DNA of 64,000 bases, taken from NCBI RefSeq assembly GCF_033153115.1, contig NW_026889803.1, positions 65,162,001-65,226,000 of the forward strand. Reading direction: 5' to 3'. Positions 282 to 42,000 of this stretch are shown here, piece by piece. Source of the stretch: Saccostrea echinata (Eukaryota). Numbering within the stretch: position 1 is the first letter of the stretch; every line of letters starts with the position of its first letter. The translations under genes and the position numbers were made by a program. The notes under the pieces were generated by a model. It searched no databases and was not told where the DNA came from. It saw only the letters and a program-made list of their open reading frames with translations.

Positions 282-3200
282 GTTCTGCCATTCATTGGTA
301 AGACTTTCAATAAAATGGAGGTTTCTCCAACCAGAACACCCAGTCTGTCATGATATCTGTATAACAATAAGAATATTTCAATGAAATTTCTAACCCTTGT
401 AGAGTATCATTTACTTACAAATATTTATAGAATGTACATATGTCCATGCATCAACAACCATTGCGAATTCTATGATAGAGGAGATAATAGGACAAGAGTT
501 ACCTCTCTTTAATACTAGCCACTTCTCTGTGCCAGAGACTACTCTCTGTGTTGTTCTGGGCCTCCCTTACAATCTCCCTGGTCCTGGGGCTCTTTCCTCC
601 CTTCTGAGGGGACTCAACAAGTATATACCTGAGAATATAAAAAAAGCTAGATGTATGTACCAAGTAAATTAAACTGTATGAAATGTATACAAGATTTCCA
701 TTGAGAGGTGCTTGTGTTACCTTTCTGTGTCATCAGACACCTGAACAACCTTTGCTTCAAACAGGTGAGGCCAGCTAACAAAAGTTGTATTACCCAGCAA
801 AGTGTTCGCAACAGCTTCAAGATCCTTTGGCTGAAATCATGATTGTAGTGTATTAAGGTTAGTTATTACACTTATAATAATACACTAATTACACTTAATG
901 TGCCTCTTTCACTTCCATCAAAATGCTGCACTTTCCTATGATTCTTTCATGTTTCTGTGACAGGACTTTTAAAATATAAAACTTTCTGAGGATAAATAAT
1001 GTTGAACTTAAGAAAATGTTAGCAAATGATAAGATGTAGGTACAGATAAGGATCTGAATAAGGATAGTAAAAGAGTAGATGGGGGATGAATGGCTCATTG
1101 ATTACTGGTAAAAATTTGTACTTTTCTGAGCCCTGTTGTTCCTGTTCAATTTACACTAAAGTATAATAAAAGTCCACTACATTAAGGAAATACAGTCATA
1201 CTTATGTGTATTACTCAACAAAAACCTCCATGTATTTCCTTCAATATCTTTTTTTTTAATCTCTGAATATAAGAAATCCTCAAACCTTCTTTTCCCACTC
1301 TGTCTGCTTTTGATATGATTTAAAATATTCCTATTCATTCTACTCAGCATCATGTAAATGTATCCCTTACATTCTCAGTATCTCATCTCCCTTCTTAAGC
1401 TAAGCTTCCTAAGCTATCTAGATCTCTTAGTATCTCACCTATCTCCTTATCTTATCTGGAAATCTCAGTATCTCATTTCTTACCTTACCATATCTAGATT
1501 TTCCAGTATCTCATCTCCCTTCCTAAGCTAAGCTTCCAAAACTATATGGATCTCTGACTATCTCAATTATCTCCTTATCTTATCTGGAAATCTCAGTATC
1601 TCATTTCTCTCCTTACCCTATCTAGATCTTCCAGTATCTCGTCTTCCTTCCTAAGCTATCTGGATCTCTCAGTTTCTCATATATTTCCTTACTCTATCTG
1701 GATATCTTGCTATCTCATCTCTCTATTTACCCTATCTGGATATCTTGCTATCTCATCTCTCTATTTACCCTATCTGGATATCTTGCTATCTCATCTCTCT
1801 ATTTACCCTATCTGGATATCTTGCTATCTCATCTCTCTATTTACCCTATCCGGATATCTTGCTATCTCATCTCTCTATTTACCCTATCTGGATATCTTGC
1901 TATCTCATCTCTCTATTTACCCTATCTGGATATCTTGCTATCTCATTTCTCTCCTTACCCTACCTGATATCTTGCTATCTCATTTCTCTCCTTACCCTAT
2001 CTGGATATCTTGCTATCTCATTTCTCTCCTTATCCTATCTGGATATCTTGCTATCTCATCTCTCTATTTACCCTATCTGGATATCTTGCTATCTCATCTC
2101 TCTATTTACCCTATCTGGATATCTTGCTATCTCATTTCTCTCCTTATCCTATCTGGATATCTTGCTATCTCATTTCTCTCCTTTCTCTATCTGGATGTCT
2201 TGCTACCTCATTTCTCTCAGTATCTCATTTCTCTCAGTATCTCATTTCTCTCCTTACCCTATCTGGATATTTTGCTATCTCATTTCTCTCCCTACCCTAT
2301 GTGGATATCTTGCTATATCATTTCTCTCCTTATCCTATCTGGATATCTTGCTATCTCATTTCCCTCCTTTCTCTATCTGGATATCTTGCTATCTCATTTC
2401 TTCTTACCCTATCTGGATCTTCCAGTATCTCTAGTATCATGTTTTCATTTCTGCTGTTCATTTGGAAAACCTTCACTCCTTCCTTCTTCAAAAATGCCTA
2501 CATCAAAATAACACAATTTCAGTGGTGTATTCAAATTTCAAACTAAACTTCTCTACAAAATCATGCTTTATGATACATTTGCAATAGAACATGTAAGTGA
2601 ATGTTGTTCAGTCATTTAATGTATTTGATGGTAAGGAGGGCTTACCATGTTGGATATATGTATGAGGATGAGGATTGTGGGATTTACCCTGTGGATTATG
2701 TGTTTGTTGTTGACTACTGTGGGATTTACCTTGTGGATTATGTGTTTGTTGTTGACTACTCTGGGATTTACCCTGTGGATTATGTGTTTGTTGTTGACTA
2801 CTGTGGGATTTACCCTGTGGATTATGTGTTTGTTGTTGATTACTGTGGGATTTACCCTGTGGATTATGTGTTTGTTGTTGACTTCTCTGGGATTTACCTT
2901 GTGGATTATGTGTTTGTGTTGACTACTGTGGGATTTACCCTGTGGATTATGCGTTTGTTGTTGACTACTGTGGGATTTACCCTGTGGATTATGTGTTTGT
3001 TGTTGACTACTGTGGGATTTACCCTGTGGATTATGTGTTTGTTGTTGACTACTGTGAGACTTACCATGTGGATTATGTGTTTGTTGTTGACTACTGTGAG
3101 ACTTACCATGTGGATTATGTGTTTGTTGTTGACTACTCTGGGATTTACCCTGTGGATTATGTGTTTGTTGTTGACTACTGTGGGATTTACCATGTGGATT

Positions 3201-6200
3201 ATGTGTTTCTTGTTGACTACTGTGGGATTTACCCTGTGGATTATGTGTTTGTTGTTGACTACTGTGGAATTTAACATGTGGGTATATGTTTGATGATAAG
3301 ACTAAGGATCTTACCTTGTGGGGTATATGTTTGAGAGTAGGGAATCCAGGGAAGAAAACATCCAATCTAACATCTGGCATCAGACCCTTCACCATTTCCT
3401 CGGGATCCACCCTGAAGGCATCAATTCCCAGCTTAGTCAACCTGCAAATTGTATTATTTGGAATTAGATACAAATTGTATTATTTGGAATTAGATACAAA
3501 TCAACTCTTTCAACAGTATTTAAAAATGTTAAAAAGAAAAATGCATACAATGAACAACAGTCATGTAACCAGCATTAACTAATTACCTGGCATGATTATT
3601 AATAATATCAGGAAAAGCCTCTGGTAATGAGGACGGGTAAGGTTCCAGTACGTCTGGCGTAAAGTTATACAGGAGACAGGGACCATGGGTATTCCGCCTC
3701 TTCTCAGCTGGGGTCAGTTCATGCTCCACTGATTTCATGGCATCTATTAGTCTTTTCTAAAATCATTAATAAATATTGCACATCACAACTGCACATTTTA
3801 TCAAAATATCATTGCAGAAATCATTTTTAATACACTGTATTTTAACTTTTGTGCTTTACATTTCTATGTAAAATCATGAAACTAATGGGCTTTGACTGGC
3901 AACTGATTGTCATGGTCATGCATTACTGCAAATTCCAAAGATGTTAACCATCACTCCATCAATTACAAGCCCCACACATTGCTCTGTTGCAAAGTTTATG
4001 TCAGAACAAAGCAGTTCTCTCCACTCTTGTAAATTGAGCTGTGATCATGAATTTCGGTAGACAGTCTATTACACAGTGTTCATAATCATGCAAAACTAGA
4101 TATCCATGAGTAACAAAGAACATTTTTTAAAGACATACAAGTAATTCATTTTTTAGCTATTATGGGCTTATTCACATATTTCAAACACTCTAAGTGACTA
4201 TGACAAATAAATGTATTAAAAGAATAAAATACATGCCAACATACCAGCACAATGAATCTGATAATTAAAACAAACCTCATCAATGAATGGAATAAGGACA
4301 ACCGCCTCCCACTCCTGCTGTTTACCATTCAGATCGGTCTGGAAATCCACCGGATAAAAGTCTATAATCGGGGAATTCTCATTGGTCATCAGCTTCTGTA
4401 AACAAAAAAATATGTCAATTATAATCTCTTTCAAAGTACATTTACATAGACCTTTTAGTATGAAGATGATATACATTCTACCTGAATTGAAGAAAATAAC
4501 CTTCATCACAATTTGCACTGAAGGAGTGCAGATATTGTCTATTTGTTTTAGGAGAGTCAGTTTAAAAACTGGGTTTAATTGACAACAAAGACCATGATGC
4601 TGGTTAGAAAATTTTTATCCTACCATTCCTATTTCTAATAAACTGCTCAAATGTTAAGGTTTCTCTGCCTTGTAATGTCACCCAAAACATGCTGATGGGT
4701 ACTACCTTTGTGTCCTTTTGGTATTCCACTAGAGTAACTTTTAAATGCATCATTTAGCTAGTAGAGAGTGACCAGATTACTTTTAAAACTAATGTGATCC
4801 CACCTGATATGGCTCAGGTAGCAGCTCTTTACTGGCAGCAGGTAACACAGCCATCAACTGTTGGAAAGGTAAGAAGGGTTTTGCCATCTCAAACTCAATC
4901 TTCAAGTCCTTAAAGTCTGTTACATCACTGATGTATGGTGCATAGTGATGTGGGTAAAACCTTCAAGTCAAAATTGTGGTGTATTAATTAAATGTTTAAT
5001 ACATGTAGGTATATTATGAAACTATCTAATTTTTGGGTACTTTATGGTTATTTCAAAATATTCCATCCCATCTTTGATATTGCAAATAAAATGGGATAAC
5101 AAAAATTTCAAATTCAATAATTCCAATGCTATCTATGAAGGATAAATTTGCTTAAACTTCAAAAAGCACATACATGTATTACCTAATATACAATTGTATA
5201 TGTATGTATATCGGCATATCCCTGATACTAAGATTTATTAAAGCTATCATCAATAACACTATCTACTGTGAATTTCCGACGATAATCCTTACCAGCTCCA
5301 GGATGGAACTCCCTCAAAGTAGTACAGAAGAATCCACTGTATCCCCCGGACGTACTGCTCACTCTGGTCCCGCAGGACTTCTTTATCCACGTTCTCATAC
5401 TCTAGCTTGGTCATGTAGTAATTACGCTTGTGGAGCCTGAACTCCTCATCAAACGTGTCACTATCCTCATCCTCATCAAGTTCTTCCTCATCCTCGTTTG
5501 TCCTAGATCTCTCTATAACACTTAGACATTTACTACATGTCTGTCATGATTAATAGTCCGTTCGACAATCAGTAATAACTCTATAAGATTTTCTGATTTA
5601 TGCTTTATTATCTTATCTTCAGTCAATAGAAGTAAATGTCCATGCATTATTCTTGTTGATAATGCATGTATTTCTACTGTAGGAGGTTTTCTGGCTTATG
5701 TTTTATGTAGCCTATCTTAATACAAGCATTAATCTTACCTTGACTTGTGCTTAAAACAAGCATTAATCTTACCTTGACTTGTGCTTAAAATAAGCATTAA
5801 TCTTACCTTGACTTGTGCTTAATACAAGCATTAATCTTACCTTGACTTGTGCTTGGTTGGGAAGGTCCAGTCTCCTCTGCCTCATTATCAAGAGATTCTA
5901 ATAACAAGAACTGGTTTGTACTCTCTTTCTTATTCTGAAAAGGAAATCACCAATGCAACTTTTTATACATGGATCACAATATACCAGATTCTGTTAACAA
6001 TACTTAAATGTAGATATGAAATTGTAATGTTTAAAGTCCAAGCCTAAAAGCTATCAAAAACAGAACTCAAATTTATCTGCAAAGTGAATTTATACAATAA
6101 AGTATACAGAAAGAAAAACTTCCCCTGCAATGTTTTTATTTTCAAACAGAAGAAGCTTTCTAAAGACTTCATTACTAAACACCTTTCTGGTTTGATCTTC

Positions 6201-9200
6201 TTGTTGCTCCGACTTCTCTGTCTTCTTTCCTTCAAACCATTTCAGGTCTGTGAATACTTCACTGAATTTGTCTACATCATACTGGTATAAAATGAATCAC
6301 ATATTTTTAAAGATACTGATCTAACATAACAAGAAGCCCATGGGCCATAATGCTCACCTGAGTCACAAATACAGTGAAATATGAGCTACCAGAACATTAC
6401 AGTTAATATATACAAATAAAGCAAAACATTTATATATGACTTTCTGCCAAATAAAATAATTCTTGCAACACAAGAATGCTACATTTGATACAGTTATTAT
6501 ACACAGATTTTATATTCATGAATTTTACCTTTGCTAATTCATTCATAAACTTCTCAAATCTCTCAAGGTTTAAGTGGCCGCCTTCATTCATGTACCCTAA
6601 AATAGGTGGAAATTTTTTATCAAGAAATAAAATTTTATTTTCACAAAAGTTCTACCCTTTCAGTAAGACATAGTACCCTCTATCTTTAGTAAAGTTTAGT
6701 GAAAAAAAAATATGATCAAGAGACCTTTCTTTCATTTCACTGCACACTGATATATTACTAGGGGAAAAAACATGTCAAAGTCACAAATTGTTTCACAAAA
6801 CATTTTTTAAGAATTACCTCCACATTCTGGGAGGATAGTCATGTAGGTTTTCCAGAGTGTAGGGAGGGCATCATGTTGTATGTGAAGGTGGGGTAGATGA
6901 GGGATAAAGTCATTCCCCACAAGGAACCCCATCAAAATCCAGTCGTCTATGATCTTCTCCAGATCATAACCAAATGGTAGCTTCCCCTTTATAAAACACC
7001 AACATAAATGTCATTCTGATGCATTGTTTAGTTGAAGACAACTAGAATAAACTTATCATAAAGTCACGAGTAAAGCATGCATCATTGTAAAGTATGCACC
7101 CCCCAAAGTTACGGGTCCTGTGTAACTTACAATCATTCAAAATGGGGGGAATACACAATAAACTTGATAAACCAACACCAAGATATTGATGAAATCAGTC
7201 CTTAAAGCTGAGAAAAGAGTTCAGAAAAAAAGGGATTGGATTTAGTTCATATGTAATATATGCATCCCCTTAATCTTGAACAATTATAAATGTGACACTA
7301 CAGTAGTTCACTGCTTGATACATGTATGTACTGATCTGAGTCTGATCAAGTGCAATGTATGTTTATATTCTAATACATGTACATGTTCTGCAGAAAATGT
7401 AGACTGGTAGCTTTTAAAAAATATTTGGAATTTCAAGTGTTAAAATTGATACCTTGAGTGCAGCAAATTCAAAATCCAGGTACTCCCTGAACAAAGAGAG
7501 ATGTAAAAGATGAAAGGTGGTTTCCTCAGGAGTGGCGGGTCTATAAATACATAACAGGAAGTGACAACAAATATACAGCATCAGGAATTCCTTATCTTTA
7601 TTTGTAAACACACTTTGGTTTCACTGTTTAGGAAAATTGTACACTTTACAAATAATCTTATCTATTGAAGCCATGAATATTCAGAAAATGTTCAATTTTA
7701 GTAACAGACAAACCTTTTGTTTTTATCTTTCTTTCCTCCAAATCTTACTTCTTCTCTCAAAAGTGAGAAATGTGGTTCATGTGTGGCCAAACCTAGCATC
7801 ATCTGTGGAAAATTGGTCTCTGTGTTAGATTCTACTTCATTGAACAATACTTGGCTCTTTATACTTTATCATTTTACACAAAGACTATCTCAAGGAGTCT
7901 GTCATGAATCATTCCTTTTAATAATCTCAATCCTAGCTATTGATCTATTTCATTCATTTACCAGATCTGCATCCAATCCATACAGACAGTGTCTGGTATT
8001 CGGATCATAGCCTGGTTTAGATTTCTGGCATCTGATGAAGTCCATAACTTTGTGTTCCCCCTCTCCTGGTGTCTGAAACATATGTAACCAAACTCAGCTT
8101 ACTGGTGCATCACTTAATTTTACAACAAAAACAATTCATTTCTAATGATCTCCCAATCAAGTAATTTCTTTTCAGAATTCATGCATTTCTTTTCTTTGTG
8201 TGTTTGTGTTTATTTATTTGGGGGGGGGGGGGGGGGTCTTTCTTTTACTCAATACTTACCTCATGTCCAGATAAATACACATTCACTCCATGCCACAAAG
8301 GATCACTGGAGATTTTACTGGTGACAAAATACTTCAACTGTTCATGTAGCTTTACCATGAACTCCGTACCTGTTACAGAACACACATACAATGTACATGA
8401 ATCTGTTTATTCTCAAACAACATCTTATGTACAGTGTATTAAAAAATATGTGAAAAATACTTTTATTTTTTCATCCTTACTTCAATTTGATACTGAAAAC
8501 ATCCAAAACATACATATAATAAAAGAGAATAAATTCTTGGAATTAAATTGACTTTGCTATGACATTAAGTATTAGGTGAACATAGCATTTCCCAAATAGT
8601 TCAAAATAAACACAGGTAAAAGCTGTGGTTCTGAACTGTCTGTTGGTACACAGATTTAAATAATATCCAGGATGTACGGTAAATATTTTAGATAAATTTA
8701 ATCACTTCAATCTTTTTTTTTTTTTAATACAAATTTATGTCCACCTTACCTGGAGTGATGCAGTTGGAATCAAATCTTTTTTCTGTGGGTAGGGTCTCTC
8801 CTGATTCTCTGGCTTTTTTCTCCAGGAGCTCAGCTTCTCGAGCCGATCTTCAAAAATCAATTGACAAATAAGATGGTAATTACCATAAACATGTACAGTG
8901 TATCAAAATCATAGAATACCAGTTAAATGAAATGTGCAAAGAGAAAAAAATCAATCAAACAAAAAAAAAAAATAATAATAATAAACAGAAAACAAAATGA
9001 CAAATACTGTTGATTCACACATTTGGTTTTGCTTCACAGTTCATTTTTCTTCATAATCTGCATTGTATGCAAGATGGAGAATTATATTGTTATTGCATTT
9101 ACTGGCCTTCATGCTTTTATTATAATAGATTGCAGATTTTTTTTCTTCTTCAGACTTCCTTAAAAATCTTCATCAGCAAAAACAAATATATCAAGTAAGT

Positions 9201-12176
9201 AAAATATTTCTATTACAAAATTTTCTAGTGAGTCAGACTAACTTTACTTAAACAGATAAAGTGGAAAAATTTATAAATCCTCTGCATCAGTTAAGTAAAT
9301 ACCATTAAATCTTACAGAACTAAAAATGAAATGGATGTAAACTCTCTGATGCTCATAAATAGGTGCAAATATTACAGCCGAGTCAAATCTCATTCCTTAT
9401 AGTCTAGCATAAACAAAAGCACATAATTGTCATAATTGGTTTATGAGTAACTTTGAGCATTTATATACAAAATACTATTACAATACATGTATCCTAAAAT
9501 TAATTAGAAAAACTTAAAAGTGAATCTTTTCAATTGTGTACATTACCTAAATCTTCTTCCTCTCTGTTGGTTCATTTTGGCTCTTGGTGCCACTCCATCT
9601 ATCGCCATGAAAAATACTTTCCTAGGTTTAATGATTCGGAACAAAAACTACAAAGGAATGACAAAATATGTTTACTCTACATAATAATTTTATTATTCAA
9701 CAGAAACAATGTAATATTTTGTATCATTGGAATTACTTGAAAGACAATTGTTAATATTATAAAGGTGGAAAATCAGGAAATTGATATGAACTTCACATTA
9801 ATTATGTTAATACAACATATCCTGTTCATTAATTGTCTGTATATAGTGTGAATGAGAATTAGGTTACTAGTCATTTAGTCATCATGTACATTTTTTTTTT
9901 CATTTATTTACTAAAATGTACCTCTAGATAATGAAAGATATCTTTGAAGATTTTCTCCTCTGTGATTCTAAAGTGAGGATTATCATCTTCAGGATGTGAA
10001 CAAACATGAATGATACCATTCATGTCCAAATACAAGTTGTCAAATTCAGGAATCTGTCCCAAAGAATAGAAAAACTATTGCAGTATACTGTAATCATTTA
10101 CACCATAGAATGCATAATACAAAGTATACACTAGGGAAAAAAACTGCAATTTTCTTGGGCATCCAGCATTATTTCAGTTACCTTTCTAAAAGCATTGGTA
10201 TGAGGCCAAAAAAAAAATAGTCTTGTTTCCTGCTACCCGACCTACCCTATTTTTTTGTACCCGACCCTAAAGTTTTTTTTAGTTTTGGAAGAAAAAAAAT
10301 TGGGAATTTCCGGTATTTCATCATTTTGTCACCATAATCGGATTCGGTGTTAACACAAAACAAGCATTTCATGAAATTCTTGTTTTAAAATATGGACTTT
10401 CATAAAATACCCTTGAGTTGTGCATAAAAAAAGACATGAAATTTAATTTTAAAAGACAATATTGACCTGTGACATGTTTAATTTGATCTTGTGTGGTAGT
10501 TGTACTTAGTTTTATTTTATTTTAATTAATGCTATATATTTTATTTCAGGAATTAATCATTCATTCATTCATCCATACATCTATACAAGCGCTGCGCCTG
10601 CATTACTAATATATTATTTATTTATATGTTTAAATCATAAACATCCCTATTTAAATAATGGTTTAACCCAAAGACTATGGGTTAAGGTAGATATAAGGAT
10701 TAGTCCATTTATAAATAAGGGTATTGTCTGTTTTCCTACATTCTATTGGTCAGATGGTATTGTTTGGTCAAAGTTGTCCATTCAGGCGGGAAACCTTTGT
10801 TTTATGATTCCATTCAAAGATACTGTCTGAGAAGGGTGTAGCTAGAGATTTGTGATTGCTTAAAATTTAATATTTGATATTTTGGAGTATATTAAACACC
10901 CATAAACTGTAAGTAAACCTTTTATAAACACATCTAATGATCATAAACTAAAATTAAAGATAATGAATGATAATAAAGTATTTTAATATAAACTTGCTAA
11001 ATGAGTATGAATGTGCTAGAGTGAAAGTTCTAAAGTTATTAAAGTTAAGATCGATATTGTAAAGTAAGAGCAAGTTATATGTTTTAATCTAATTCATGTA
11101 GATCTTTGGATTAAGATCTGGGTTTGAATTATTATGATTTTATAATTTATTAATCCATTAGGTCATCATGTAATAATTCTTTAAAGTCATCCTGATCAAG
11201 AGATAAATCACTCAGTTCCATACACTGGTATGTTAAACTCATATTTTTAAAGTTGTAAATATTTCAGTATAGAGAAATATAATTTAGATCATTAATTCAG
11301 TAAGAGTTTCAAAGAGTTATCGCCCTTTGAATGCGTTTATATAAAGTGTAAAGTAATGGCTTAAATGAATGTTTTATGTGTTTAAATTGTGATCGTTTTG
11401 TGTTGTAAAGTGAATGTGCTTGTTTATATGTTGTCTATGTATTTATATGTTGTTATTGTTATTTTAGGGTTAATTTAAAACATTTAATTCATCTTGAAAT
11501 CAACTATATATCTCCACGGAATAAATACTAAGAATCCAACCCTATATACCATCTTGCAGTCATTTTTTAATTTCTACAAGAACCGGTTACACTTGTATTA
11601 GTTCATATCCAAAAAATGCCATCAGAAAAAAATAAAATGAAAAAATAAAATAAAATAATTTTCCTACCTACCTACCATATTTTTTTCAAGCTGGTAGCAG
11701 GAAACAAGACTATTATTTTTTTTGGCCTGATCAGGGAACTATATATGTTAATATATATGTCCCTGGTACAATTTCGACCCCAAGAAACATTGACATAAAA
11801 TATTAACATTCATCAAATGTCCTAATAATTAGGAAAATAGAATATCAAATGTGAAAGTTAAATACATTTCCTGGTAACAATAAACTGACAAGGACAAAGA
11901 TTACCTGATAACAAATTATTTCCGATCTATGTAAACAGTCACACAAATATGACAATTTGGAATATTATTCCCTAAAATTGTATTTTATACATGCAATAAT
12001 TATATAAATATATGTATATATACTCTTGTTAAGTAATAACTTTTTTGTTCAAAGCCGGGAAACTTGTTAATATATAAAAAAAAATTAAACAATATTTTTA
12101 CCTGGAATTCCTTAACAGTTTCACTGAGACATGGGTATCTTTCGCTAACCCATCTATAGAACTTTGGTACACCCAT
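282..12176 (-). CDS. XRN1: 5'-3' exoribonuclease 1, N-terminal part (21 coding exons; gene continues beyond position 1)
   Basis: The spliced translation begins [19 protein letters not shown] and contains [72 protein letters not shown] and [20 protein letters not shown], all XRN1 hallmarks. Exons, all GT-AG and phase-consistent: 12102-12176, 9922-10053, 9547-9647, 8750-8847, 8260-8369, 7962-8072, 7714-7802, 7453-7540, 6818-6986, 6529-6596, 6183-6281, 5841-5934, 5293-5512, 4804-4960, 4276-4395, 3587-3756, 3315-3441, 2408-2497, 721-830, 503-628, 282-356. Confidence 0.97.
1370..2432. repeat. 38-bp minisatellite (~27 copies) derived from the XRN1 exon 2408-2497 donor junction
   Basis: Unit is approximately tatctggatatcttgctatctcatctctctatttaccc. 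The centre is homogeneous and the ends diverged, with a 128-bp higher-order duplication at ~1377-1632. The last copy overlaps the real exon end and donor. Confidence 0.93.
2640..3335. repeat. 42-bp minisatellite (~16 copies) derived from the XRN1 exon 3315-3441 donor junction
   Basis: Unit gactactgtgggatttaccctgtggattatgtgtttgttgtt gives the 14-aa periodicity seen in the ORF track. Terminal copies resemble the true junction cttaccttgtggggtatatgtttga. Confidence 0.93.
3445..3501. repeat. 26-bp tandem duplication in an XRN1 intron next to an acceptor site
   Basis: caaattgtattatttggaattagata x2 plus a partial copy. Confidence 0.85.
5719..5854. repeat. 34-bp x4 tandem repeat spanning the XRN1 exon 5841-5934 donor
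   Basis: aatacaagcattaatcttaccttgacttgtgctt x4; every copy reads CAAG|GTAAGA on the minus strand. Confidence 0.95.
6328..6365 (+). mobile_element. Isolated end fragment of a Helentron-associated element (HINE)
   Basis: acaagaagcccatgggccataatgctcacctgagtca matches the termini at 34013 and 35947. Confidence 0.7.
10204..11727. mobile_element. Non-autonomous TIR element (~1.5 kb) in XRN1 intron 1
   Basis: TIRs ggccaaaaaaaaaatagtcttgtttcctgctacc / ggtagcaggaaacaagactattattttttttggcc, flanked by TGA on both sides (possible 3-bp TSD). Superfamily uncertain (Harbinger- or Kolobok-like). Confidence 0.8.
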
Positions 12177-12400
12177 AATGATGACTCAAAGTGAGAAAGC
12201 ATACAGAATTTTTCAATAATCTTAGCAAAATATGTGTCAAGTTGTGAAACACATACAATTTTTCTTCACCGGAACTAGTATCTATTACTATAGCTTTTTT
12301 GGTCTCTTTGACGCTGAAGAGTTCCACTTAAATTACACGACAACTTCCCTTTCCATATCAACTTTTCTGCTGTGTTTGTTAGTCTCTGGATAATCATAAA
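12177..12400. promoter_or_regulatory. Bidirectional promoter region shared by XRN1 and SPCS1
   Basis: The divergent ATGs at 12176 (-) and 12401 (+) are separated by only 224 bp. ETS-like CCGGAA at 12269-12274 and TGACTCA at 12182-12188. Confidence 0.75.
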
Positions 12401-17890: not shown

Positions 17891-17892
<2 letters not shown>

Positions 17893-25652: not shown

Positions 25653-27911
25653 TTAAAGAGCAATTACACAGATACATATTGTAAAACCAAGAAACCAGTA
25701 CTTTGACATTGCAAGTAAACTAGCTTTGGATACAGAAGCTACTAGGGGGAGTGGGCTGATGCTAAAGCTAGTGGCATTACCTGATTCTGTTGTCTTTTTC
25801 TCCTCTGGAATTCCAAAGATTTTTTCTTTAGTCTTGTAAAACGATTCATCATACCGAAACACCTGTCCTAAAATGATATTTAGAGCAGCCACATCATACT
25901 TATGACAGCCTCTGTATAGGTATAGAGGCTTCCTGTCTGTACAGCCCGTGTTTGAGGCCCCCACGGGGTTCAGGCAGTCACTAGAGAGGGCACACTTTAC
26001 CCACGGTAGCATCACTTTGCTGTGTAGTGTTTCAGTGTTGTGTAGAATCAGGGGATTAGCCTGGGCAGTTTCCAGGAAGTAGTATTGTTCAGCTGAAGCT
26101 TTGAAGTATTTATACATTTTGTCATAAGTTATGGTGGACACTGGGTCCTTACTTGTCCAGGCCACTATCCCAGTCTTCTGAGCTTTCTTCAGGAGAGGCT
26201 TAATGTCTCCAGAAATAAAACTGTATTCAGATGGCTCTACCCATATCACTGTTCCATTGTCATTTAAAATTTTCTGAAGAGAAGTTTGTTATATAGATTA
26301 TGATTCATTCAATTTGAGAAATCTCAGCTTAAAGGCTAATAATTCTTAGCATTACTATATCTCCGACAGGTATATTGTATACATTTGTTATGGCAAAAGT
26401 ATTACAGGTAAAATGGTTTTCAGATGAAAGTTCTTAATAAAGGAAACAAATCTAAAGAAATAAAAACATGTTAAGATGATCTGTGAGACAATAATTAAGT
26501 TTGTATGAGAACTAGAAGAGATATCTCTTACTCTTAAGGATTAAGTCAATGTAGACTTATCTAATAAACAAAAATTAACCTGTATCAGAACTGGCCTGTA
26601 GCTTAGTAATGAGATAAACTCAGTGAGATAACATTTTTACCTGTATGAGAACTGGACTATAGCTGAATATGAGATGATGTCTCTTAAATAACTCAGTGAG
26701 ATAACATTTTTACCTGTATGAGAACTGGACTATAGCTGAATATGAGATGATGTCTCTTAAATAACTCAGTGAGATAACATTTAACTTGTATGAGAACTGG
26801 CATGTAGTTGGGAATTGAGATTTTGTTAAATGACATAGTGAGATAACATGTTTACCTGTGTGAGAACTGGCCTGTATGTGGTCATGAGATGTCTCTTAGA
26901 TGACTCATTAAGATAACATTCTTACCTGTAATAGAACTGGCCTGTAGCTGGGTATTGAAATGTCTCTAAGATGAGATGGATAATCTTCAAATTCAAACAT
27001 CTTTACTGTACATGAGGAAGTTTTGTTGCAATGAACAGTCAACTGTAATAGAGTTGAAATACAAAGAATTTTCACAATCCAAAAATATCAACTAAGAATT
27101 TACATAATCCAGACATGTAGAGATATAAAATTAACATGGCCTGATACATTTATGACATTGATTAGATATCATAACAATAAACAATATTCAAGTCAGCTAC
27201 TGGGATAGACATCCCACATACCAGAAATTAAAATGATTTCCATTTCCATATGTAATAATGTACATTTAGTATACTTATATATTTTTTTTATCCTTTTGAC
27301 TTTCCCATAAACAGGCTTCACTGTATTTAAAATATCTAATTTACATTGGGGGAAAAAACCACTGCAAAATATTACAAACAATGTATAGCTATACATACAT
27401 ATATTACTCATACCTTTAAATGTTTCTGATAGCTTAACCCTAGATCATATATTATAACAGGAACATCTGGTAGAAATTTGCTGGCTGATTTGACGAGTGC
27501 AATAACTTTATCTAAGGATTTAGGAAGAGCAGGTATAGCTATGACAGGCTTGTTGATTGTTGCATTAATCTTTTTAATTTTCTCCTTGCTGAACTTCATT
27601 ACATTTTCTGTGTTAATGGGATCTACATCAAATCCAAGTTTATCCAATAACTTAAGGTCTACATGAAAATCCTCCTGATTTGAACTGCGGATGTTGCTTG
27701 GAATGTTTTTGAAATTGTTGATCTGTTTATGGGTTTGTGCAACAATTGTGTTAAAATTCGGTGTTGGATTACTTAGTAACCACAGAGACATGGAAGTTGC
27801 TCCCATAAAGGCTAGCATAATATAAAAATTTTTGGTTTTCATCTTTTCCCTAAGACTAATGCTTTTCCACTTTTGGCACAAATTCTGAACAGCATCTAGC
27901 AACTCTTTCAT
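25653..27911 (-). CDS. DUF1647-family membrane protein (putative glycosyltransferase-like), ~411 aa (388 aa from the ATG at 27842)
   Basis: Exons 27414-27911, 26926-27042, 25653-26273, all phase 0. N-terminal TM segment, then IIYDLGL, FEFEDYPSHL...YRPVLLQ, PWVKCAL...C..P.G and CHKYDVAALNIIL, which match the DUF1647 pattern. Probable 5'UTR acceptor at 28078-28079 and upstream donor at 29279-29280. Confidence 0.85.
26570..26975. repeat. ~70-bp x6 tandem repeat spanning the DUF1647 exon 26926-27042 donor
   Basis: Donor-equivalent positions at 26578, 26639, 26712, 26784, 26854 and the true site 26924. The unit is ~48 nt of exon end plus ~22 nt of intron start. Confidence 0.9.
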
Positions 27912-29465: not shown

Positions 29466-30091
29466 GTAGGCTAGATGGCATATGACTTTTGAAATATGTA
29501 ATCTATTTCATGCCCGAATAGGTAAGAATTTTACTTTCAGTATAAAATATTTGAATGGTGCAATTAAATAAATATAGTGATCCCACAAACCCCAATCGGA
29601 CAATATGAATAAATAAGCCTTTAACTTATGAGATAAATTTTAAGATCTATAGAGACCTGTATAATATACTGGTACATTTCAACCCCCCCCCCCCCTAGAT
29701 AGAACATTCTAACTTTAAAATGATTTTGTCCTACGGACCCGGTGAGGGCTTAGATTATTCTAACTACCCTCCCCCCTCCCAGATGTAGCAGTACACATGG
29801 AGAGATCCCCATCCCCCCCGCCCCCCCCCCTTTAAAAAAATATCTCAAAAAATATTGATTTTGAAACAAAAGTTCATTGTTAATCCGTTTAAAACAATTC
29901 TGCTAATTTTTTAAAACTTAATTTTAAAGAGATAAAAGACTTTTTTAGGATGCACCAAACTGGTATCAATTCACAATGGGAGGGAGTGCCATTTCAAGAC
30001 CTTCCCCTGCACCCTATTCCAGAAATCTGGTAGCTAGGCCAATTGATCATAAAAAATATTGAATTTATAAAAATTTTACCCTTTTCTAGAA

Positions 30092-32099: not shown

Positions 32100-32687
32100 A
32101 TCAACATCAAAAGTAACAGAATTAAATCAGTTATGAGAAACTGTCATACATTAAGATAAAAAAGACCTTCATTTGTAGCTTCTAATAGACATGTTGAATT
32201 TGAATTGTTAAATACATATCCCCTCTCTTTTTTTACAGACTTGCTTCTTGGCCCTTTTTTTTGTTTTGTTTTGTTTTTGTTTGTTTGTTTGTTTTGGTTT
32301 CATTTTTTGCCACATATCAGTTGAAACATGCAAGACATGCCTTTAGTCTGTGATACAAATTCTCTTTTTTAAATTTAATTGATAACTATATTATGTACTG
32401 TTTAATACACTTTTTGCAAAGAATCTGTGATTGTAACTGTGCAATAGGTCAAAGGAAAACTGATGTATAAACACTTAAGGTATAAATACATAATAATTTG
32501 ACAAATAAGTAAAACAACCTACACATCTTTGTTTGCTTTGAAATGTATTAGAGTAGAATAAAATTGATATACACATTTATATTCTCAGTTTTCTTTAATG
32601 TTCTTAAATATTAAATGTCATACAGTCAATTATATTAGTTTTTCAGCTTTTTATGGACTAAAATTCATCCTTTTTTTCTGGATTTAC

Positions 32688-33119
32688 CAGGTCCAGCACA
32701 ATACCCCGATAAAGGTATATAGCTTGATAAAGCTATATACCTTTATCAAGGTATTACAAATACCTTGATCAAGGTATTTTATGTAATGAAAATACAAAAA
32801 AAATCCTAAAAAATTTAACTTTAAATGTCGAATTATGAGTTGTGGTCAGTGTGTTCACTCGTGCATGAAAAGTACTCAGGTATCAAAAAGACATCATAAA
32901 GGAACGTTTCCTCACAGATGTGCTTTTATACTGATTCCTTAGTGTTTGAGTACTTTACATGCATGAGTGAATTTACTGAAAACAACTCAGAACTAGACTT
33001 TCAGTATTTATTTTTTTAGGATTTTTTTGGTATTTTCATTACATAAAATACCTTGATCAAGGTATTTGTAATACCTTGATAAAGCTATATAGCTTTATCA
33101 GGGTATTGTGCTGGACCTG
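32688..33119. mobile_element. Palindromic MITE with 5-bp TSD (same TIR family as 28182-28987)
   Basis: caggtccagcacaatac...gtattgtgctggacctg; TSD TTTAC; the arms pair over ~190 bp. Confidence 0.9.
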
Positions 33120-34012
33120 TTTACCAAGCTGTGTATGATTTTGATGAGCAATGCAACAGCAAAATGCCAGCAATGCAAGACAAATCTTAGTACAACAATG
33201 CTATGGTAACCTAGGAACCTAACATGGTGCCCCTCAAAGAATTGAAAATGAACCCCATATTAACAGCTTTAACAAAGGCAATAGAGGGGAACAGAAGACT
33301 TGTTTTCAACATTTTAAAAAAAAAAAACCCTTGACCCCCTCTAGGTCTGTGCATGGCCTTGGTGCATGATCAAGAATATGTTGCGTCTTAAAAAATATCA
33401 CAGGTACTTTCTGCATAGGAAAAAAGAGCATGAGCAGGCATAGCATTGCTTTTTCATCAAGATGTACTTGATGTTGGTGGATAAAATTCGTTAGTGAATA
33501 CAACATATACAATTTGGTCTGTGCTTTTTATTTTTACAATTGTTAAACAGGCCCATAGGCCATAGTTACCAGGCATGTATTTTTCCAAGTCACATGCAAT
33601 TTTTTAAATGTACTTTGTAAAATTTGAAAGTCCCTATATATTTACACTTGGTCCAAATCCAAAATGTAATGATTTTGACCCAACACACGAGAATACTTTG
33701 AAGTCATGAAGATTTTCTAAAAACTCCCATCAAAATATGATGTCAGATATCCCCCTTAAAAAGAAGACAAGGAAATTTTATTCTACACTGCATCATGATG
33801 AAAGTTTTGCTTGAAAAATTAACACACACGGTACATTCATGAGTTTTATTCACAAAATAAGTCACTTGCCCTTTCATCCCTGTACAATACATCAGTCATT
33901 GAAATGGCTAGCATAAAGAAATTTGTGATGGAGGGAATCTGGGTTTGATTGGTACATGACTTTGATTTTCAAAAGAAAATTTCCAAAAAGTCCAACTTAG
34001 GAGATGCACTGA

Positions 34013-35488
34013 AACAAGAGGCCCATGGGCCACAATGCTCACCTGAGTCAATATGGCCCTGCTGTTCTTTGTCAGCAGATTTCTTCTTCTATATATTCAT
34101 ATGTAAAGCTTTGATCAACTGTTCTAGGCATAACCTATCCCCAGTTGCCATGTTTTGAATGAAATTGAATCTAAACTTTCTGAGGATGCTTCTATATTCA
34201 TATAATTAATCATGGTTTTGCTGTTCTTGAAACAGAATTTTAAAGATGTCTGCCATCCTACCCTGGGGGGTAGGAAGGGAGGGGGGGTTCAAGATTTGAA
34301 CAAACTTGAATCTACACTACCTAAGGATACTTCCATATCAATATGACTAATTATGGCTTTGTTGTTCTTGAGAAGAAGATTTTTTAAGATATTTCTTATA
34401 TATATTCTTTTGTTAAACTTTGATCCCCGATTATGGCCCCACCCTACTACTGGAGGATGCCTTGAACAAGCCTGAATCTACAATACTTGGGGATGCTTCA
34501 ATATCAAAATGACTAATCACGGCTTTCCTGTTCTTGAAAAGATTTTAAAAGATTTTTCCTATTTATTCCTATGTAAAATTGACTAATCACGGCTTTCCTG
34601 TTCTTGAAAAGATTTTAAAAGATTTTTCCTATTTATTCCTATGTAAAACTTTGATCCCCCATTGTGGACCCACCCTACCCCCGGGGGTCTTGATTTCGAC
34701 AAAATTGAATCTACACTACCTAAGGATGATTCCATATCAATATGACTAATTGTGGCTTTGCTGTTCTTAAGAAGAAGATTTTTAAAGAATTTTCCTATGT
34801 ATTCCTACGTAAAACTTTGATCCCCCATTGTGGCCCCACCCTACCCCCAGGGGTCATGATTTGAACAAACTTGAATCTACATTACCTGAGGATGATTCCA
34901 TATCAAAATGACTAATTGTGGCTTTGTTGTTCTTGAGAAGAAGATTTTTAAAGAATTTTCCTATATATTCCTATGTAAAACTTTGATCCCCCATTGAGGC
35001 CCTACCCTACCCCCGGGGGTCATGATTTGAACAAACTTAAATCTACACTACCTGAGGATGATTTCATATCAATATGACTAATTGTGGCTTTGTTGTTCTT
35101 AAGAAGAAGATTTTTAAAGAATTTTCCTATGTATTCCTATGTAAAACTTTGATCCCCCATTATGGCCCCACCCAACCCCCGGGGGTCATGATTTGAACAA
35201 ACTTGAATCTACACTATGTAATGAAGGTTTCCCATAAGTTTCAACTTTTCTGGCCCAATGATTCTTGAGAAGAAGATTTTTAAAAGAAGACACCAAATTT
35301 TCACTTATTCTTAATTATCTCCCCTTGGAAGAGGGCATGGCCCTTCATTTGTACAAATTTAATCCTCCTTCACCTAAGGATGCTTTGTGGCAAGTTTGGT
35401 TGAAAATGGCCCAGTGGTTCTGGAGAAGAAGTCGAAAATGTGAAAAGTTTACAGACGGACGGACGGACAGACGGACTACGGACAAAAT

Positions 35489-35535
<47 letters not shown>
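34013..35535 (+). mobile_element. Helentron-associated interspersed element (HINE) carrying ~7 Cg170-type 166-bp satellite monomers
   Basis: Terminus aacaagaggcccatgggccac...gctcacctgag; 166-bp periodicity (34705, 34871, 35037, 35203); (GACG/GACA)n microsatellite; terminal hairpin aaagctcacttgagctttcagctcaggtgagctaaaa. Confidence 0.9.
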
Positions 35536-35536
<1 letters not shown>

Positions 35537-35946
35537 CTGTAGTCATCGCTGCCAGAACTTGATGATTTATTTATACTAGACGTTAATGTTTGCATATAGT
35601 CACATTAATGCATGTCATTTTGTCACTGTAAAAAGCATGTGGTAATCACTGTTTTGAAGAGGTTGCATTATATATTGATGCTCAAAAATTTTCTGGTTCA
35701 GTTTCACCTTTTCCCAATTATCTCACTCGGGAAAGGGACATGACCCCTAATTTGAACAAACTTGAATCCCCTAGAAAGCTTTGTAGTAAGTTTGATTGAA
35801 AATAGAAATTGGCTCCAGAAAAAAAATGAATTAATGTTTGTATTCAAAGATAATGAACAATCCAGAATCACAGGCACCTAAAGCGTGGATCAATAACCCC
35901 CCCCCCCCCCTTTACTTAAAAAAAATGCAAGAGATTATTATTTCTC

Positions 35947-37182
35947 AACAAGAGGCCCATGGGCCACATCGCTCATCTGAGTAACTTTGGCCATGCTGTT
36001 CTTTACCAGATTTCCCCCCTAGTAATACCTATTGTGGCCCTGCCCTACCCCCTGGGGTCATGATTTGAACAACTCAGATTCTACACTACCCCAGGATGCT
36101 TCCAAATAAGTTTCAGCTTTTCTGGTCCAGTGGTTCTTGAGAAGAAGATTTTAAAAGATTTTTCCTATATATTTCAATGTAAAACTTGGATTGCCTATTA
36201 TGGCTCCGCCCTACCCCCGGGGGTCATGATTTGAACAATTTAGAATCTACACTACCCCAGGATGCTTCCAAACAAGTTTCAGTTTTTCTGGCCCAGTGGT
36301 TCTTGAGAAGAAGATTTATAAAGATTTTTCTTATATATTTCAATGTAAAACTTGGATTCCCTATTGTGGCCCCGCCCTACAGTGTACCCCCGGGGGTCAT
36401 GATTTTTACAATTTAGAATCTATACTACCTGAGGATGCTTCCACTTAAGTTTCAGCTTTTCTGGCCCAGTGGTTTTTGAGAAGAAGATTTTTTAAGATTT
36501 CTCCTATATACTTCTATGTAAAACTTGGATTCCCTATTGTGGCCCCGCCCTACCCCCGGGGGTCATGATTTTAACAATTTAGAATCTACGCTACCTGAGG
36601 ATGCTTCCATACAAGTTTCAGCTTTTCTGGCCCAGTGGTTCTTGAGAAGAAGATTTTTAAAGATTTTTCCTATTTATTTCAATGTAAAATTTGGATTCCC
36701 TATTGTGGCCCTGCCCTACCCCCAGGGGTCATGATTTTTACAATATAGATTCTACACTACCCCAGGATGCTTCCATATAAGTTTCAGCTTTTCTGGCCCA
36801 GTGGTTCTTGAGAAGAAGATTTTTTAAATATTTTTCTTATGTATTTCAATGTAAAACTTGGATTCCCTATTGTGGCCCCGCCCTACCCCCAGGGGTCATG
36901 ATTTTTACAATTTAGAATCTACACTATCCCAGGATGCTTCCACATAAGTTTCAGCTTTTCTGGCCCAGTGGTTCTTGAGAAGAAGTTTTTTTAATGACCC
37001 CACCATATTTTTGTCTTTTCTTGATTATCTCCCCTTGTAAGGGGACTTGGCCCTTTATTTTAACAATTTACACTCCCCTTCACCCAAGGATACTTTGTAC
37101 CAAGTTTGGTTAAAATTGGCCCAGTGGTTCTTGAGAAGAAGTTGAAAATGTGAAAAGTTTACAGACGGACGGACGGACGACG

Positions 37183-37230
<48 letters not shown>
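35947..37230 (+). mobile_element. Second complete HINE with ~6 Cg170-type monomers
   Basis: Same termini, microsatellite and hairpin as the first; monomers at ~166-bp spacing between 36030 and 36990. Confidence 0.9.
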
Positions 37231-39058
37231 TGTAAGATTTCCTCGTCAATCACATCCATCAGCAGATTGTACTTTTTCTTACATTTAGAGAATGGCCTTG
37301 TATGGTATAATAACACACAAGGTAAGAAACAAAAGTTGTTAACAAACGGGGGGTTCCCCGCTATGAGGCCGATTTCCAAGGTAATAACAGCGTTATACCT
37401 ATCATAATTTTGCAAGCACTCTGTCATGGAGATTATTGTTCTACTAGTTTCTAAACCCCATCATTAGTGTTTTGTATCCTGTAATCGGACAAATATTAAT
37501 CGGATACATAAAATGTTCTCCATTGACTGCTTTGAAGGAGGTTTTGAGCATCAAACTGTTACTTTTCCAATCCTTTATTATCTTTGAATTCTTACTATAA
37601 AAGTATTGCATCAAAACATTATGTGTAATACAGACAACAGTATTTTTTTTACATATCAGTCTACATATTAAATACATTTACATGAATATACAACTGTCAC
37701 ATTACACACAGGTACTTAGAGCCACATCTACATGTATAATATAGTTCTCTAATACAAAATGCATTGGAGCTCTGTTTTACATCAAAGTTTATAGAGTTGC
37801 AGAGGAAGTACCGGTATTTACTTTCACCGGAGTATTTCACTGAACACTCTTTGAAGAGAAATGAACAAAGCAACAACTTGCTTAGAATCAAATTGCACAT
37901 TTCTTAAGCTGCATTTTCTTTAAATACAGACTATAAAGCAGAGGATTTTTCTACAGTCCACACACACACATAAAGGAAAACCTCACTGGGACCCTCCCAA
38001 AATTAAATACATTGGACAGTAAAACATGTATAATCTGGATGGTGTGTACCGAGTATTCCAAAATCTTATGTATTATAATGAAAACTTCAGGTAAATTCAT
38101 TTGTTTAAAAATATTCTCTAATCTGGAATGTTGTCTCATCTGGAACCATTAGTGCCCTGATTAGACAAGTTTTACTACAAAACAAGGGGTTATTTAGCAG
38201 TATTTAACTTTAACAATCTGTTGTCCAAATTACTATTCAAAATTATGAAAACACATGGAGGTCAAACAATAACATCTAAAAAAAAAAAAAAAAACCTTGT
38301 TTTTATACAAAAAACAGTAAGTATCATAAATCCACCAGACCACACCAAAATCCATTCGTTTAGTCAGTCCAATGAATTCTTGTGGTGAACTTAAAAATCA
38401 ATTAAGCATTCCTTTAAACAACTCTTTACATAGGCTTTATAATACAATATTAATTATCATGTAAAAAAAAAATGATCAGGTACATATTACATCAAAGAAC
38501 AAAAATAATCCTATAAAAGTGAGATATCAATTTTGTAAATAGAAGATAACAACAACATGCCATTTCTTTATCCTATCACATCTATTGATTGTATCCTAAC
38601 ATATCACCACTCTAGTCCACATTAAAAATACATTAACAGTCAGTATCTAATACTGGATATAGGTAAATAAAAAATATATTCCAATGCAAGTAGATTTTTA
38701 TGAGGGAGTGTTTAACAAGCACAAAATAACTTAAATTCTACATGTAAAGCAACTGGATTTTTAAAACAAGAAAATTTTGATCCCAGAAAAAAAACTTTTT
38801 AATGAGATGCACTAAAGTTGTCTTTGTCACGGATTATGGATTATGCACAATCTGTACAAACAGTCTTCATTCTGAAATGAGAAAAAGAAAAAAAAATCTG
38901 TAAGGAAAAGTATTTAATGCTTGATCTTTCTATGCCCTTTCTTGTTTGCATTTTGTGTAGCTTGTGCATTTAACATTTCATACTACGAATACTTTCTAGA
39001 TCACGGTCCATCATATGTTATCAAAAAGTAAGGAGAACCCACTTGTTCTGACTTACTA

Positions 39059-42000
39059 TTATACATTAACTTCCATCTGTTCTGGAGTGGACGTTGTCCG
39101 TTTTCCCTCCTCCAGCATTTGTTCTACAATTTTCCACAAACAAGATTCCTTTGGAAAGTCATTGTCCACCAAGTTAACCAAGTAATAACTGTTAAAAATA
39201 TGGTCAATGATTTTTCTAGACTGCGATCCTTCTGAGTAAAGGTTACCCCAGGGGTGTTTCCACAATTCAAAGGCTTCATCCTGAAATGTACACATACATG
39301 TAACCAGAGGTCTCCAACGAGACTGAAGCTCGACTGGTCTGTACTTAGATAGAAGATAAAAGAGAAGTTGCACTGGGTTGATAATTTTTTTTGAAACATT
39401 TTTAGAATTCTGGATCTATATGTAATCTATTTATGTAGCTAATTTTTTAGAAAAAGGACCAAAACTGTAGCTGTAGTTTTTGATGAATTTCACAGAAATT
39501 TCTAGCAACTATGGCAACAATGTTCATCAAAATCAAAAATCAATATTTATATGTGCCCGTGAAGTTTACTTGTATGCTATAGTTTCATTCAAATAAACTG
39601 AAACTGTAGGAAGAGTAGTACTTTGCAAAATGTTTGCAATCAGTCAAACAGAGAATGTATGCTCTTCTGGTCTTCAACAAATAGAAAAAAATAGATCTGC
39701 AGGCCAGGGATAATTTTTTTTTTCAAAGTCATTTAGTACCCATACCTTCCAGGTTTTGAAGGCAATAGGATCCACCACTGTTGGTTGTATAATCTCTTTA
39801 CCAGGGAACACTCCCCAGGTGACTGCTATAGGAGTAGTGAGATCACAGTTTGTGTAGTCTGCCTCACCCTTAAAAATTTCATAAAAGAAAGCTGGTAAAA
39901 ACAGTTTACATCATCAGGTGCTTGCTTAAATTTATACTGTCATATATCACCTCATGCCTTTACTTACATTCTTATCCACTATATGATAGTTGACTAGGGG
40001 AAAGTTTTTCAATATTTTCTTCAGAGCAATACCGTTTTCTTTAGATGTGAAGAATTCCAAGTATGCCTAATAAATGTAAGTTACTCACAGTAAACATTCA
40101 AAGAATATATATATGTACCAGCAAAACAGAATATGACAACTGTACACTTTCTTTTTAAAAATATTTTCCTCTGAAATTATGTTTATGACTATGCCAACAT
40201 GCTAATTGTCAGTAAAGTGAACTGAACATTTACAAAGGAACTCTGACCTTTTGGTAGATGTAGCCATTGGGTGACCCCCAGCCCAGTTTGCTGTCTGAGG
40301 AGGGAGCTCCATTGACATTGGGCTGAGAGTTGATGGTGAGAACTCCACGTTTGTTGATGGCTTCAAGTTGCTCCTTAATAAAACCCGTCTCTGGTGACAA
40401 TTCATCATCATTCCATGGCATAGACCGAACCTAGTGAAAGATACCATTTAATTGGCTATTTGACTTCCCTTTCAAAGATTAAATGCATTCTTATTCCCTG
40501 TGTAATTCCATATATTCTTGATTTTTTTTTTAACTTATCCTGACCCAATTCTTACTGGAACATCCACATGTGTAAAACTAACCTTGACCCCATCCTTATT
40601 GGAACATCCAGATATGTAACACTGAAACACATCCCACACATCCTGCTCCGAGTTCAATTCCTCTCCCCACATTTTGAGGAGATCCTCTTTGGGAGGTTTA
40701 TGCTTCATATAAAACAAGTAGTAGTCTGTAAGATCTCCAAAAGAAGCTGCTGAGGAGTTCCCCCAGCGACCATTGGGAAACTCATCCCAGTTTGAAGTTC
40801 TGTAAATGTAACTCTTTGGTCGAGATCGCCAGAAGATTGGTCGCACATCCTCTTTACAACGCACATAATTGGCAGTCTGTTTCCATGGCAATGGTTTACA
40901 AGGCTCCTCCACCCACATGCCAAGTCTTTTGAGGATTTCAATGGTTGCGACTTCCCTGTTGAGTGTATAGAAGTGAACACCATGCACATCCTCATGTTTG
41001 AGAAGTTCACGACACATTTGGAATGCTTGTTCCACACCGTAGTTTCTGATTGCCTCATCATTGTCTTTAATCGGTTCAATAGCATCCAGAATCTCCTTTG
41101 GTACTTCTAATCGTGACAATTTCACAATGTGTCTGAGGGACTGGTAGGCCTATTTGTAAATGGAATTTTTTTTTTTTTTACGTTTTTCCACTCTTTTTAT
41201 AGAAATCATTTAATAATAAAGTTTGAATCTTCAAAGAAAATTTAGTGAAGCATTTTACAAAAGCTATCAAGCCAAAGACAGAATTTCTGTAGTATTTTAA
41301 CTTAAAGATGTTAAATACCTGAATTGGAAGGACACCTGGTATTATTGGACAGGTAATTCCTATCTCTCTACAGTCACGAACAAATTGAAAGAAAGTCTCT
41401 GCTTTGAAAAACAACTGTGTTATGATAAAGTCTGCACCAGCATCCACTTTTTCTTTCAGATGACGCAGATCTTCTGCATAAGAAGTACATTCTGGATGTC
41501 CAGTTGGGTACCCTACAAAAATTTACATAAAACTTTAAAAAAAAAAAAAAAACAGTGCACATTTTAATTGCTTTTAATTTTCAAAAGTGTCAGTCTAACA
41601 TTTATCTAGGTAACAATATTCTTGCAGTATGACTCATTTTCCCCATCACATAATTCTTAAGGTATGACTGTAACAATCCAAGGCAAGAAAATATAGGTGA
41701 CCCAATGGCCTCAAAAGGAGTCAATTCTGAAATACGCTTAATCTGATGGACCAGTGACTTTCTTGCAAAGTTAATCTTAATTCAACAACTTTAACACTAA
41801 AACATTCTTTAACATAATATCTGATCAAAAACAGAGAAGCAAGTGAAAATAAGAAATTATTCCTAGCCCCGTCAATAGTATTTTTTCTTTACCAGCCACA
41901 CAAATGGTGAAATGATCCCCATGTTCCTTCCTGATCAGTTTGACCAGATCTGTGGCATAGTTCAGTCCCTCCTCTTGTTTTGTCCAAGTTAACCCACCAT

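Follow-up and report, generated by a model that had tools for sequence, protein, structure and literature searches.

Tandem copies of exon ends and their 5' splice sites at the start of five introns in three neighbouring genes of the bivalve Saccostrea echinata

How does an intron come to begin with tandem copies of the end of the exon that precedes it, and why should such copies gather at the 5' splice site (donor)? The question is raised by a stretch of 64,000 nucleotides of the bivalve Saccostrea echinata (contig NW_026889803.1, positions 65,162,001 to 65,226,000), hereafter called the window, in which positions are counted from its first letter. Five introns in three neighbouring genes of this window, namely three in XRN1, one in a gene which we call here the third gene and one in MTHFR, open with tandem copies of the preceding exon end and its donor. 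These repeats had been noticed in an earlier inspection of the letters (the sequence-only reading). In our analysis they are probably boundary-spanning minisatellites, of the kind termed "mirages" in amphioxus and known from human F7 IVS7.

All five repeats lie on the minus strand, as do the exons named below, and Tandem Repeats Finder (TRF) together with reading of the sequence found them where the sequence-only reading had placed them, with the extra copies inside the intron. In each array the first unit consists of the last 11-46 nt of the exon, the donor GT and the first intron bases. If a boundary-spanning array is understood as at least two units, the first of which holds exon end, splice site and intron start, then all five of the five junctions carry one. 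TRF picks up four of the repeats and misses the duplication in MTHFR. For a further measure 29 introns were mapped, of which XRN1 holds 19, MTHFR 8 and the third gene 2, the choice among candidate splice sites being made by scripts that joined or translated the exon ends. The 30-mer centred on each junction was then sought within 400 nt on the intron side, downstream of donors and upstream of acceptors, using 300 shuffles; a second test employed 24-mers of exon sequence only.

The largest array, XRN1-a (1376-2432), has a 38-bp unit in about 27 copies, the first of which is made of the last ~25 nt of the exon at 2408-2497 and its donor (GT at 2407-2406). On the minus strand the exon end reads ...GATACTGGAAGATCCAGATAGG followed across the boundary by gtaaga, and this is then repeated by the unit. 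TRF gives period 38 over 1376-2418 and a 128-bp higher-order part at 1376-1658, which is the older, distal part of the array. The junction 30-mer recurs in the intron at 23/30 (z 4.8) and the exonic 24-mer at 19/24 (z 5.0). A distal copy, matching at 35/38, resembles the exon-end unit more closely than do most copies in the homogenised core.

Array XRN1-b (2640-3335) is built of a 42-bp unit in about 16 copies, counting decayed end copies, with 94% matches; the TRF record is 2676-3292, period 42, 14.7 copies and 94% matches. It is seeded by the exon at 3315-3441 (donor GT at 3314-3313), the end of which reads ...CAAACATATACCCCACAAG and then gtaaga, followed by units closing ...cacagg gtaaat; the junction 30-mer recurs at 20/30 (z 4.3). 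Array XRN1-c (5716-5854; 34-bp unit, 4.1 copies, 96% matches in TRF) follows the exon at 5841-5934 (donor GT at 5840-5839), the last 11 nt of which lie inside the unit. It reads CACAAGTCAAG up to the boundary and gtaagattaatgcttgtattaag after it, four times over, so the authentic donor is followed by three further donors that do not differ from it, and the junction 30-mer recurs at 29/30 (z 12.3).

The array of the third gene (26570-26975) has a unit of 70-73 bp, about 46 nt of exon and about 25 nt of intron, in about 6 copies including decayed ends, with 80% matches (TRF: 26617-26950, period 73, 4.7 copies, 80% matches). Its junction 30-mer recurs at 27/30 (z 10.7) and its exonic 24-mer at 22/24 (z 9.4). 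In MTHFR there is a single decayed duplicate of 44 bp at 40537-40623, copying 31 nt of exon end and 13 nt of intron; by eye 30 of 37 positions match without gaps, and the copy has ATAAGT, i.e. AT in place of the donor GT. The junction 30-mer recurs at 20/30 (z 5.0) and the exonic 24-mer at 20/24 (z 7.4). The same duplicate appears (40531-40627, d=44, 25/30) in a scan for local duplications, defined as 30-mers recurring at >=23/30 within 12-200 nt, which gave 35 clusters in the window versus 0-1 in composition-matched shuffles.

A repeat carried by a transposable element was considered and rejected, as the arrays are specific to their loci: a whole-genome search with 1300-6000 and 26400-27100 returned their own loci and one weak match of 67%, the segment 26400-27100 finding its own locus only. 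The possibility that the copies were made by the assembler is likewise poorly compatible with the arrays themselves, the copies of which diverge in a structured fashion, with a homogenised core and ancestral-like ends.

That the units come from exons, and that these exons are real, can be judged from the proteins. The closest full-length relative of the N-terminal exon of the first gene is the Pinctada imbricata 5'-3' exoribonuclease 1 (P0018), with XRN_N, XRN_M, D1, D2/D3 and SH3 domains. In tblastn, residues 633-686 of Pinctada XRN1 fall at 3467-3312, residues 686-716 at 2497-2405 and residues 715-752 at 833-720; since these are consecutive parts of the protein, the two large arrays, XRN1-a and XRN1-b, sit in introns between consecutive coding exons. 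The residues at the exon ends before both arrays are conserved in Pinctada and Haliotis XRN1. In MTHFR the exon with the duplicated 3' end (40583-41149, donor GT at 40582-40581) matches Pfam MTHFR_C, the profile position 106 ending the exon at 40583 and position 107 starting the next exon (40430 downwards). Because the exon ends are conserved as coding sequence in the XRN1 relatives and in the MTHFR_C profile, the arrays derive from the exons and not the reverse.

For the third gene the putative exon of 39 codons (26926-27042, donor GT at 26925-26924) is an open frame bounded by a ttacag acceptor and a CAG/gtaaga donor; neither RNA nor a spliced homologue was found for this junction, the relatives of the first and last exons being unspliced single-exon translations. 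The sequence-only reading had labelled the gene DUF1647, a name which Pfam does not support (no match with E up to 5); Atlas offers a weak lead for DUF1647 (rank 16, score 0.85), with PF07801 in 19% of cluster members. One relative, a translated public contig (P0151), matches the last exon of the gene with 80% identity, and its residues 1-25 are a translated copy of the 73-bp unit, standing ~85 codons upstream of that last exon. A distal copy of the 73-bp unit may, judging by this match, be shared with a related taxon.

Whether the authentic donors are used was followed in four public runs (X1-X4), which we placed on 1200-7000; their RNA nature is guessed and their depth is low, and their contigs tell of presence only, giving neither abundance nor proof of absence. 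In the four runs 9-14% of sampled words are present, as expected for exons only, and their RNA-like contigs cover exons and leave nearly all intron sequence bare. Nine joints with GT..AG ends were found. One skips 2498-3314, the entire 42-bp array, with GT..AG ends in X1 and X2, and recurs in X3 and X4 with one polymorphic letter; another, seen with GT..AG ends in X1 and X2, skips 5513-5840, the entire 34-bp array. In three runs (X1, X2 and X4) contigs stop precisely at 2408 and continue beyond the examined stretch, from which we conclude that the 38-bp array is skipped too. The exon-proximal donor is used at all three XRN1 arrays. Evidence that the junction is a functioning one is therefore at hand for four of the five, i.e. 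for three in XRN1 (spliced contigs and protein continuity with Pinctada XRN1) and for the one in MTHFR (Pfam positions).

A contig of X4 covers 5757-5854, about 2.5 units of the 34-bp array, in unspliced form. The simplest reading is pre-mRNA, because X2 has an unspliced contig as well, at 5380-5638 by the next acceptor; a further short unspliced contig of X4 lies at 5825-5921 on the 34-bp array. Less simply, these contigs may reflect use of the fourth donor copy. Elsewhere in XRN1, within the intron segment 6244-6437, contig depth when summed comes to 180-840 in all four runs, and many loose ends gather at 6327-6367; the segment has the look of a small fragment of a dispersed repeat that is expressed.

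The extra copies of the three XRN1 arrays are silent, in that splicing from a downstream donor copy is seen in none of the contigs, within the low depth of these data and with contigs rather than reads. The suggestion of the sequence-only reading that the copies form a bank of decoy or alternative donors thus finds no alternative-donor use in the contigs. In the 34-bp array the donor scores 6.5 bits at each of the offsets 0, 34, 68 and 102, and in the 38-bp array the authentic donor scores 4.9 bits and copies up to 6.6, and still the first donor is the one used. Elsewhere the copies have decayed, as is expected for unused sites, most units of the 42-bp array having GTAAAT and several 73-bp units GTAAAA or GTTAAA. 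Unit length is not a multiple of 3 in four of the five arrays, and splicing from a downstream copy would in most cases change the reading frame.

These data bear on a possible function of the arrays, for which they might be kept: banks of U1 sites could aid definition of the upstream exon, curb premature polyadenylation in AT-rich introns or supply alternative in-frame donors. The 38-bp array retains several strong donors, a copy of the 73-bp unit is translated in the contig of the related taxon (P0151), and the 42-bp array, within the open reading frame 2616-3473, can be read through in the frame of XRN1 for 233 codons with its copies in phase, a frame shared with the tblastn segment at 3467-3312. 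A homogenised array should, however, by our estimate be open throughout in about one case in two or three, and the lack of any contig with a downstream copy, the unit lengths and the weakened donors in most 42- and 73-bp copies, together with the MTHFR copy devoid of GT, all speak against it. We regard maintenance for function as unlikely. Downstream donor use in the 42-bp array would insert 14-residue repeats, and no contig has them.

If the arrays are boundary-spanning minisatellites, we infer the following course of events. A short tandem duplication would copy the last 11-46 nt of an exon with the 5' splice site and first intron bases, and slippage or unequal exchange would expand the duplicate to anything from 2 to ~27 units. 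The middle of the array would become homogenised, with end copies retaining the ancestral sequence. As long as the exon-proximal donor is spliced, the extra copies would leave with the intron, the mRNA would be unchanged and the arrays would be near neutral. The mirror event at an acceptor would add a second AG ahead of the true one, altering the mRNA, and would mostly be purged, which would produce a donor bias. In short, copies would be tolerated, and at donors more than at acceptors, because the first donor is the one used. Such asymmetric selection had been one of two alternatives offered in the sequence-only reading, and it agrees with the use of the exon-proximal donor in the RNA-like contigs, as in human F7 (PMC1557585). 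To describe the five repeats as stages of one process, as was also done there, is reasonable, and as an actual sequence of events these stages are conjectural.

The bias itself was examined in the 29 mapped introns. In the junction test just the five claimed donors stand out, with 20-29 of 30 matches and z of 4.3-12.3, equalled in 0 of 300 shuffles; the remaining 24 donors stay at z <=2.2. None of the 29 acceptors stands out (z <=2.7), and the test with exon sequence only agrees. The sequence-only reading had counted five of about 41 coding-region introns; the five donors hold and 29 introns could be mapped in the three genes, the others lying in further genes. Its statement that no repeat straddles an acceptor also held true. 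A perfect 26-bp duplication of 2.2 copies at 3445-3501 (minus) stops 3 nt before the acceptor AG of the XRN1 exon 3441-3315; it copies a branch-point-like tctaat and leaves out the AG and the exon sequence. With its 100% identity it appears to be very young.

Could ordinary intronic minisatellites have come to lie beside donors by coincidence? The genome is rich in tandem repeats, and 20 random 10-kb pieces of the same chromosome (200 kb) contain 39 clusters of period 15-100, i.e. 0.195 per kb, with a mean period of 46. At this density random placement gives 0.009 arrays straddling any given junction with their first unit, or 0.26 for 29 donors and 0.37 for the 41 of the sequence-only reading, where five are seen; the Poisson probability of >=5 such arrays is 8e-6 to 4e-5. 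The density which had been found striking is indeed so. A heuristic requiring a donor and an open frame, when applied to the random sample, missed three of the five known arrays, and the sample served for repeat density alone. The post hoc choice of the window favours coincidence to some degree. Against it, and against copies made in assembly, stand the 11-46 nt of conserved coding exon in the units, the low chance expectation, the structured divergence of the copies and the contig of an independent run that spans 2.5 units of the 34-bp array. This explanation is largely refuted and in our view very improbable.

Several points weigh against the reading as boundary-spanning minisatellites, or against the force of the numbers given for it. 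Five of 29 donors versus none of 29 acceptors gives a Fisher P of 0.05, which is weak alone. First-donor use explains why copies are tolerated and leaves the excess over ordinary intronic repeats unexplained: tolerance alone predicts donor arrays at about the deep-intron rate per base, and the window has ~14-19 times that. This order-of-magnitude excess may stem from more frequent birth of arrays at donors, from their slower loss or from some function of the copies. The junction of the third gene is deduced from open frame and splice consensus. With RNA runs that are guessed and of low depth, some rare downstream-donor use may occur. Finally, the window owes its selection to its striking look and the Poisson probability therefore overstates the case; for this reason whole-genome counts of heptamers were made as well.

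For these counts the whole genome was searched for each heptamer in three successive copies, with the reversed pattern as control. At period 22-52 the donor heptamer AGGTAAG gave 1998 matches versus 287 in the control (ratio 7.0), GGTAAGT 1533 versus 247 (6.2) and AGGTGAG 977 versus 445 (2.2); at period 53-83 AGGTAAG gave 2310 versus 225 (10.3). Of the acceptor-like heptamers at period 22-52, TTTCAGG gave 236 versus 281 (0.84) and TTGCAGG 125 versus 24 (5.2). The latter is thus 5 times its control, yet about nine families account for its matches, which belong mostly to two long arrays and one dispersed element. The acceptor test has by estimate about a quarter of the power of the donor test, because one acceptor heptamer represents a smaller share of real acceptors than one donor heptamer does of donors. 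All these figures are counts of matches and not of arrays. On contig C1, where the listed rows were sorted by eye, there are 16 unrelated AGGTAAG arrays versus ~3 true arrays of the reversed motif, the remaining reversed-motif matches being copies of one dispersed element, which reduces the excess at array level to about 3-5 times. Moreover, some donor-motif arrays are satellite families present at more than one locus and not derived from exons. One tandem family of 55-58 bp, found at several loci (e.g. C1:28879960-28883628 and C1:36901046-36918619), carries a donor-like ACAGGTAAGAG motif. Within these limits donor motifs are truly in excess genome-wide; for acceptors the signal is mixed and much weaker.

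Such an excess invites a mutational explanation instead of a selective one, in which 5' splice sites are hot spots of duplication through events linked to transcription or U1 on the nascent RNA (R-loops, pausing) or through the AAG..GTAAG microhomology contained in an exon end and its donor. The excess over random placement is indeed larger than tolerance alone predicts, and the 34-bp XRN1 unit has AAG on either flank. Two donor-like arrays of the random sample (L020:3377-3420 and L010:5019-5143) are without an adjoining open frame, as would fit a process driven by the motif; both are unannotated, however, and a 3-nt microhomology is trivial in AT-rich sequence. A further difficulty is the GTGAG class, enriched just 2.2 times. 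R-loops and U1 pausing, which the sequence-only reading had proposed, are conjectural as a mechanism. We consider a hot spot possible, and less probable than the origin by short tandem duplication and tolerance outlined above.

A broader and still more doubtful proposal, which we put forward only tentatively, is that in this bivalve genome 5' splice sites are preferred birthplaces of minisatellites through mutation linked to transcription or splicing rather than through tolerance alone. Some thousand to ten thousand introns might then start with copies of their own exon end, and splice donors would be a principal source, acting in one direction, of intron growth and of variable number tandem repeats (VNTRs) in genes.

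If the donor-biased excess holds against a full annotation, it would show an influence of splice junctions on the places in which minisatellites arise or persist. Also on offer would be a concrete and datable route for intron lengthening, and thousands of genic markers, likely polymorphic in length, in farmed and ecologically important animals. The arrays are natural experiments on the choice of the 5' splice site, in which identical or stronger downstream donors go unused, and pipelines for gene prediction and variant calling should anticipate them.

Other repeats and genes of the window may be mentioned briefly. An 87-bp duplication in two copies at 44539-44710 is found 110-280 nt before the acceptor belonging to the first coding exon of MTHFR; purely non-coding, it falls short of that acceptor. 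Some 2 kb of sequence upstream of MTHFR is filled by a satellite family of 166-168 bp (34344-35284 and 36028-36991), which recurs in 6 of the 20 random 10-kb samples and is therefore a major repeat of the genome. At 59029-61059 (plus strand) an intronless open frame of 676 codons resembles, by eye, a family-31 glycoside hydrolase.

The structure described here is of an already known kind. The sequence-only reading, which knew of no description at this density, is not supported as regards earlier descriptions of the kind: amphioxus mirages (PMC3087553, PMC3902484) and human genes (PMC1557585) precede it. In the literature searched, coverage of which is incomplete, we found no description of donor arrays in molluscs. 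In amphioxus, minisatellites spanning the exon-intron boundary are reported for Adh3, troponin C, the globins BflGb6 and BflGb9, and PGBD5 (PMC3087553, PMC3902484); splicing is undisturbed, and the core is homogenised with the edges excluded (PMC3087553). The bivalve arrays share with them boundary-spanning units of tens of bp or more that include splice signals, the production of normal mRNA and the homogenised core. They differ in that amphioxus mirages have been reported at both 5' and 3' boundaries and their somatic instability has been shown, whereas the bivalve arrays stand at donors only (five versus none), with several cases in neighbouring, unrelated genes of a bivalve host.

A different comparison is offered by the Rogers model, in which an intron is gained through tandem duplication of an exon segment containing AGGT (PMC3265369, PMC4974935). 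There too a tandem duplication copies a splice signal and the spliceosome removes the part between; that duplication lies within an exon and creates a new intron, while in the bivalve an existing intron is lengthened with no new position. Intron gain of this type was rejected for the present arrays, which lie inside introns with an authentic donor and a distant unique acceptor, the duplicated part of the exon not being re-used.

Close parallels are also found in human genes. In F7, IFI6 (6-16), CBS IVS13, LMNB2 and PDGFA the first monomer spans the boundary between exon and donor (PMC1557585). These cases are single and scattered, and the frequency per intron in the bivalve looks much higher. 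For IFI6 and CBS, use extends to the first two pseudo-sites, whereas at the low depth of our contigs no downstream use is seen. In the 37-bp VNTR of F7 IVS7 it was shown experimentally that the most upstream site alone is selected among five to nine identical ones (PMC1557585), and the 34-bp XRN1 array, with its four identical donors and silent pseudo-donors, presents the same situation.

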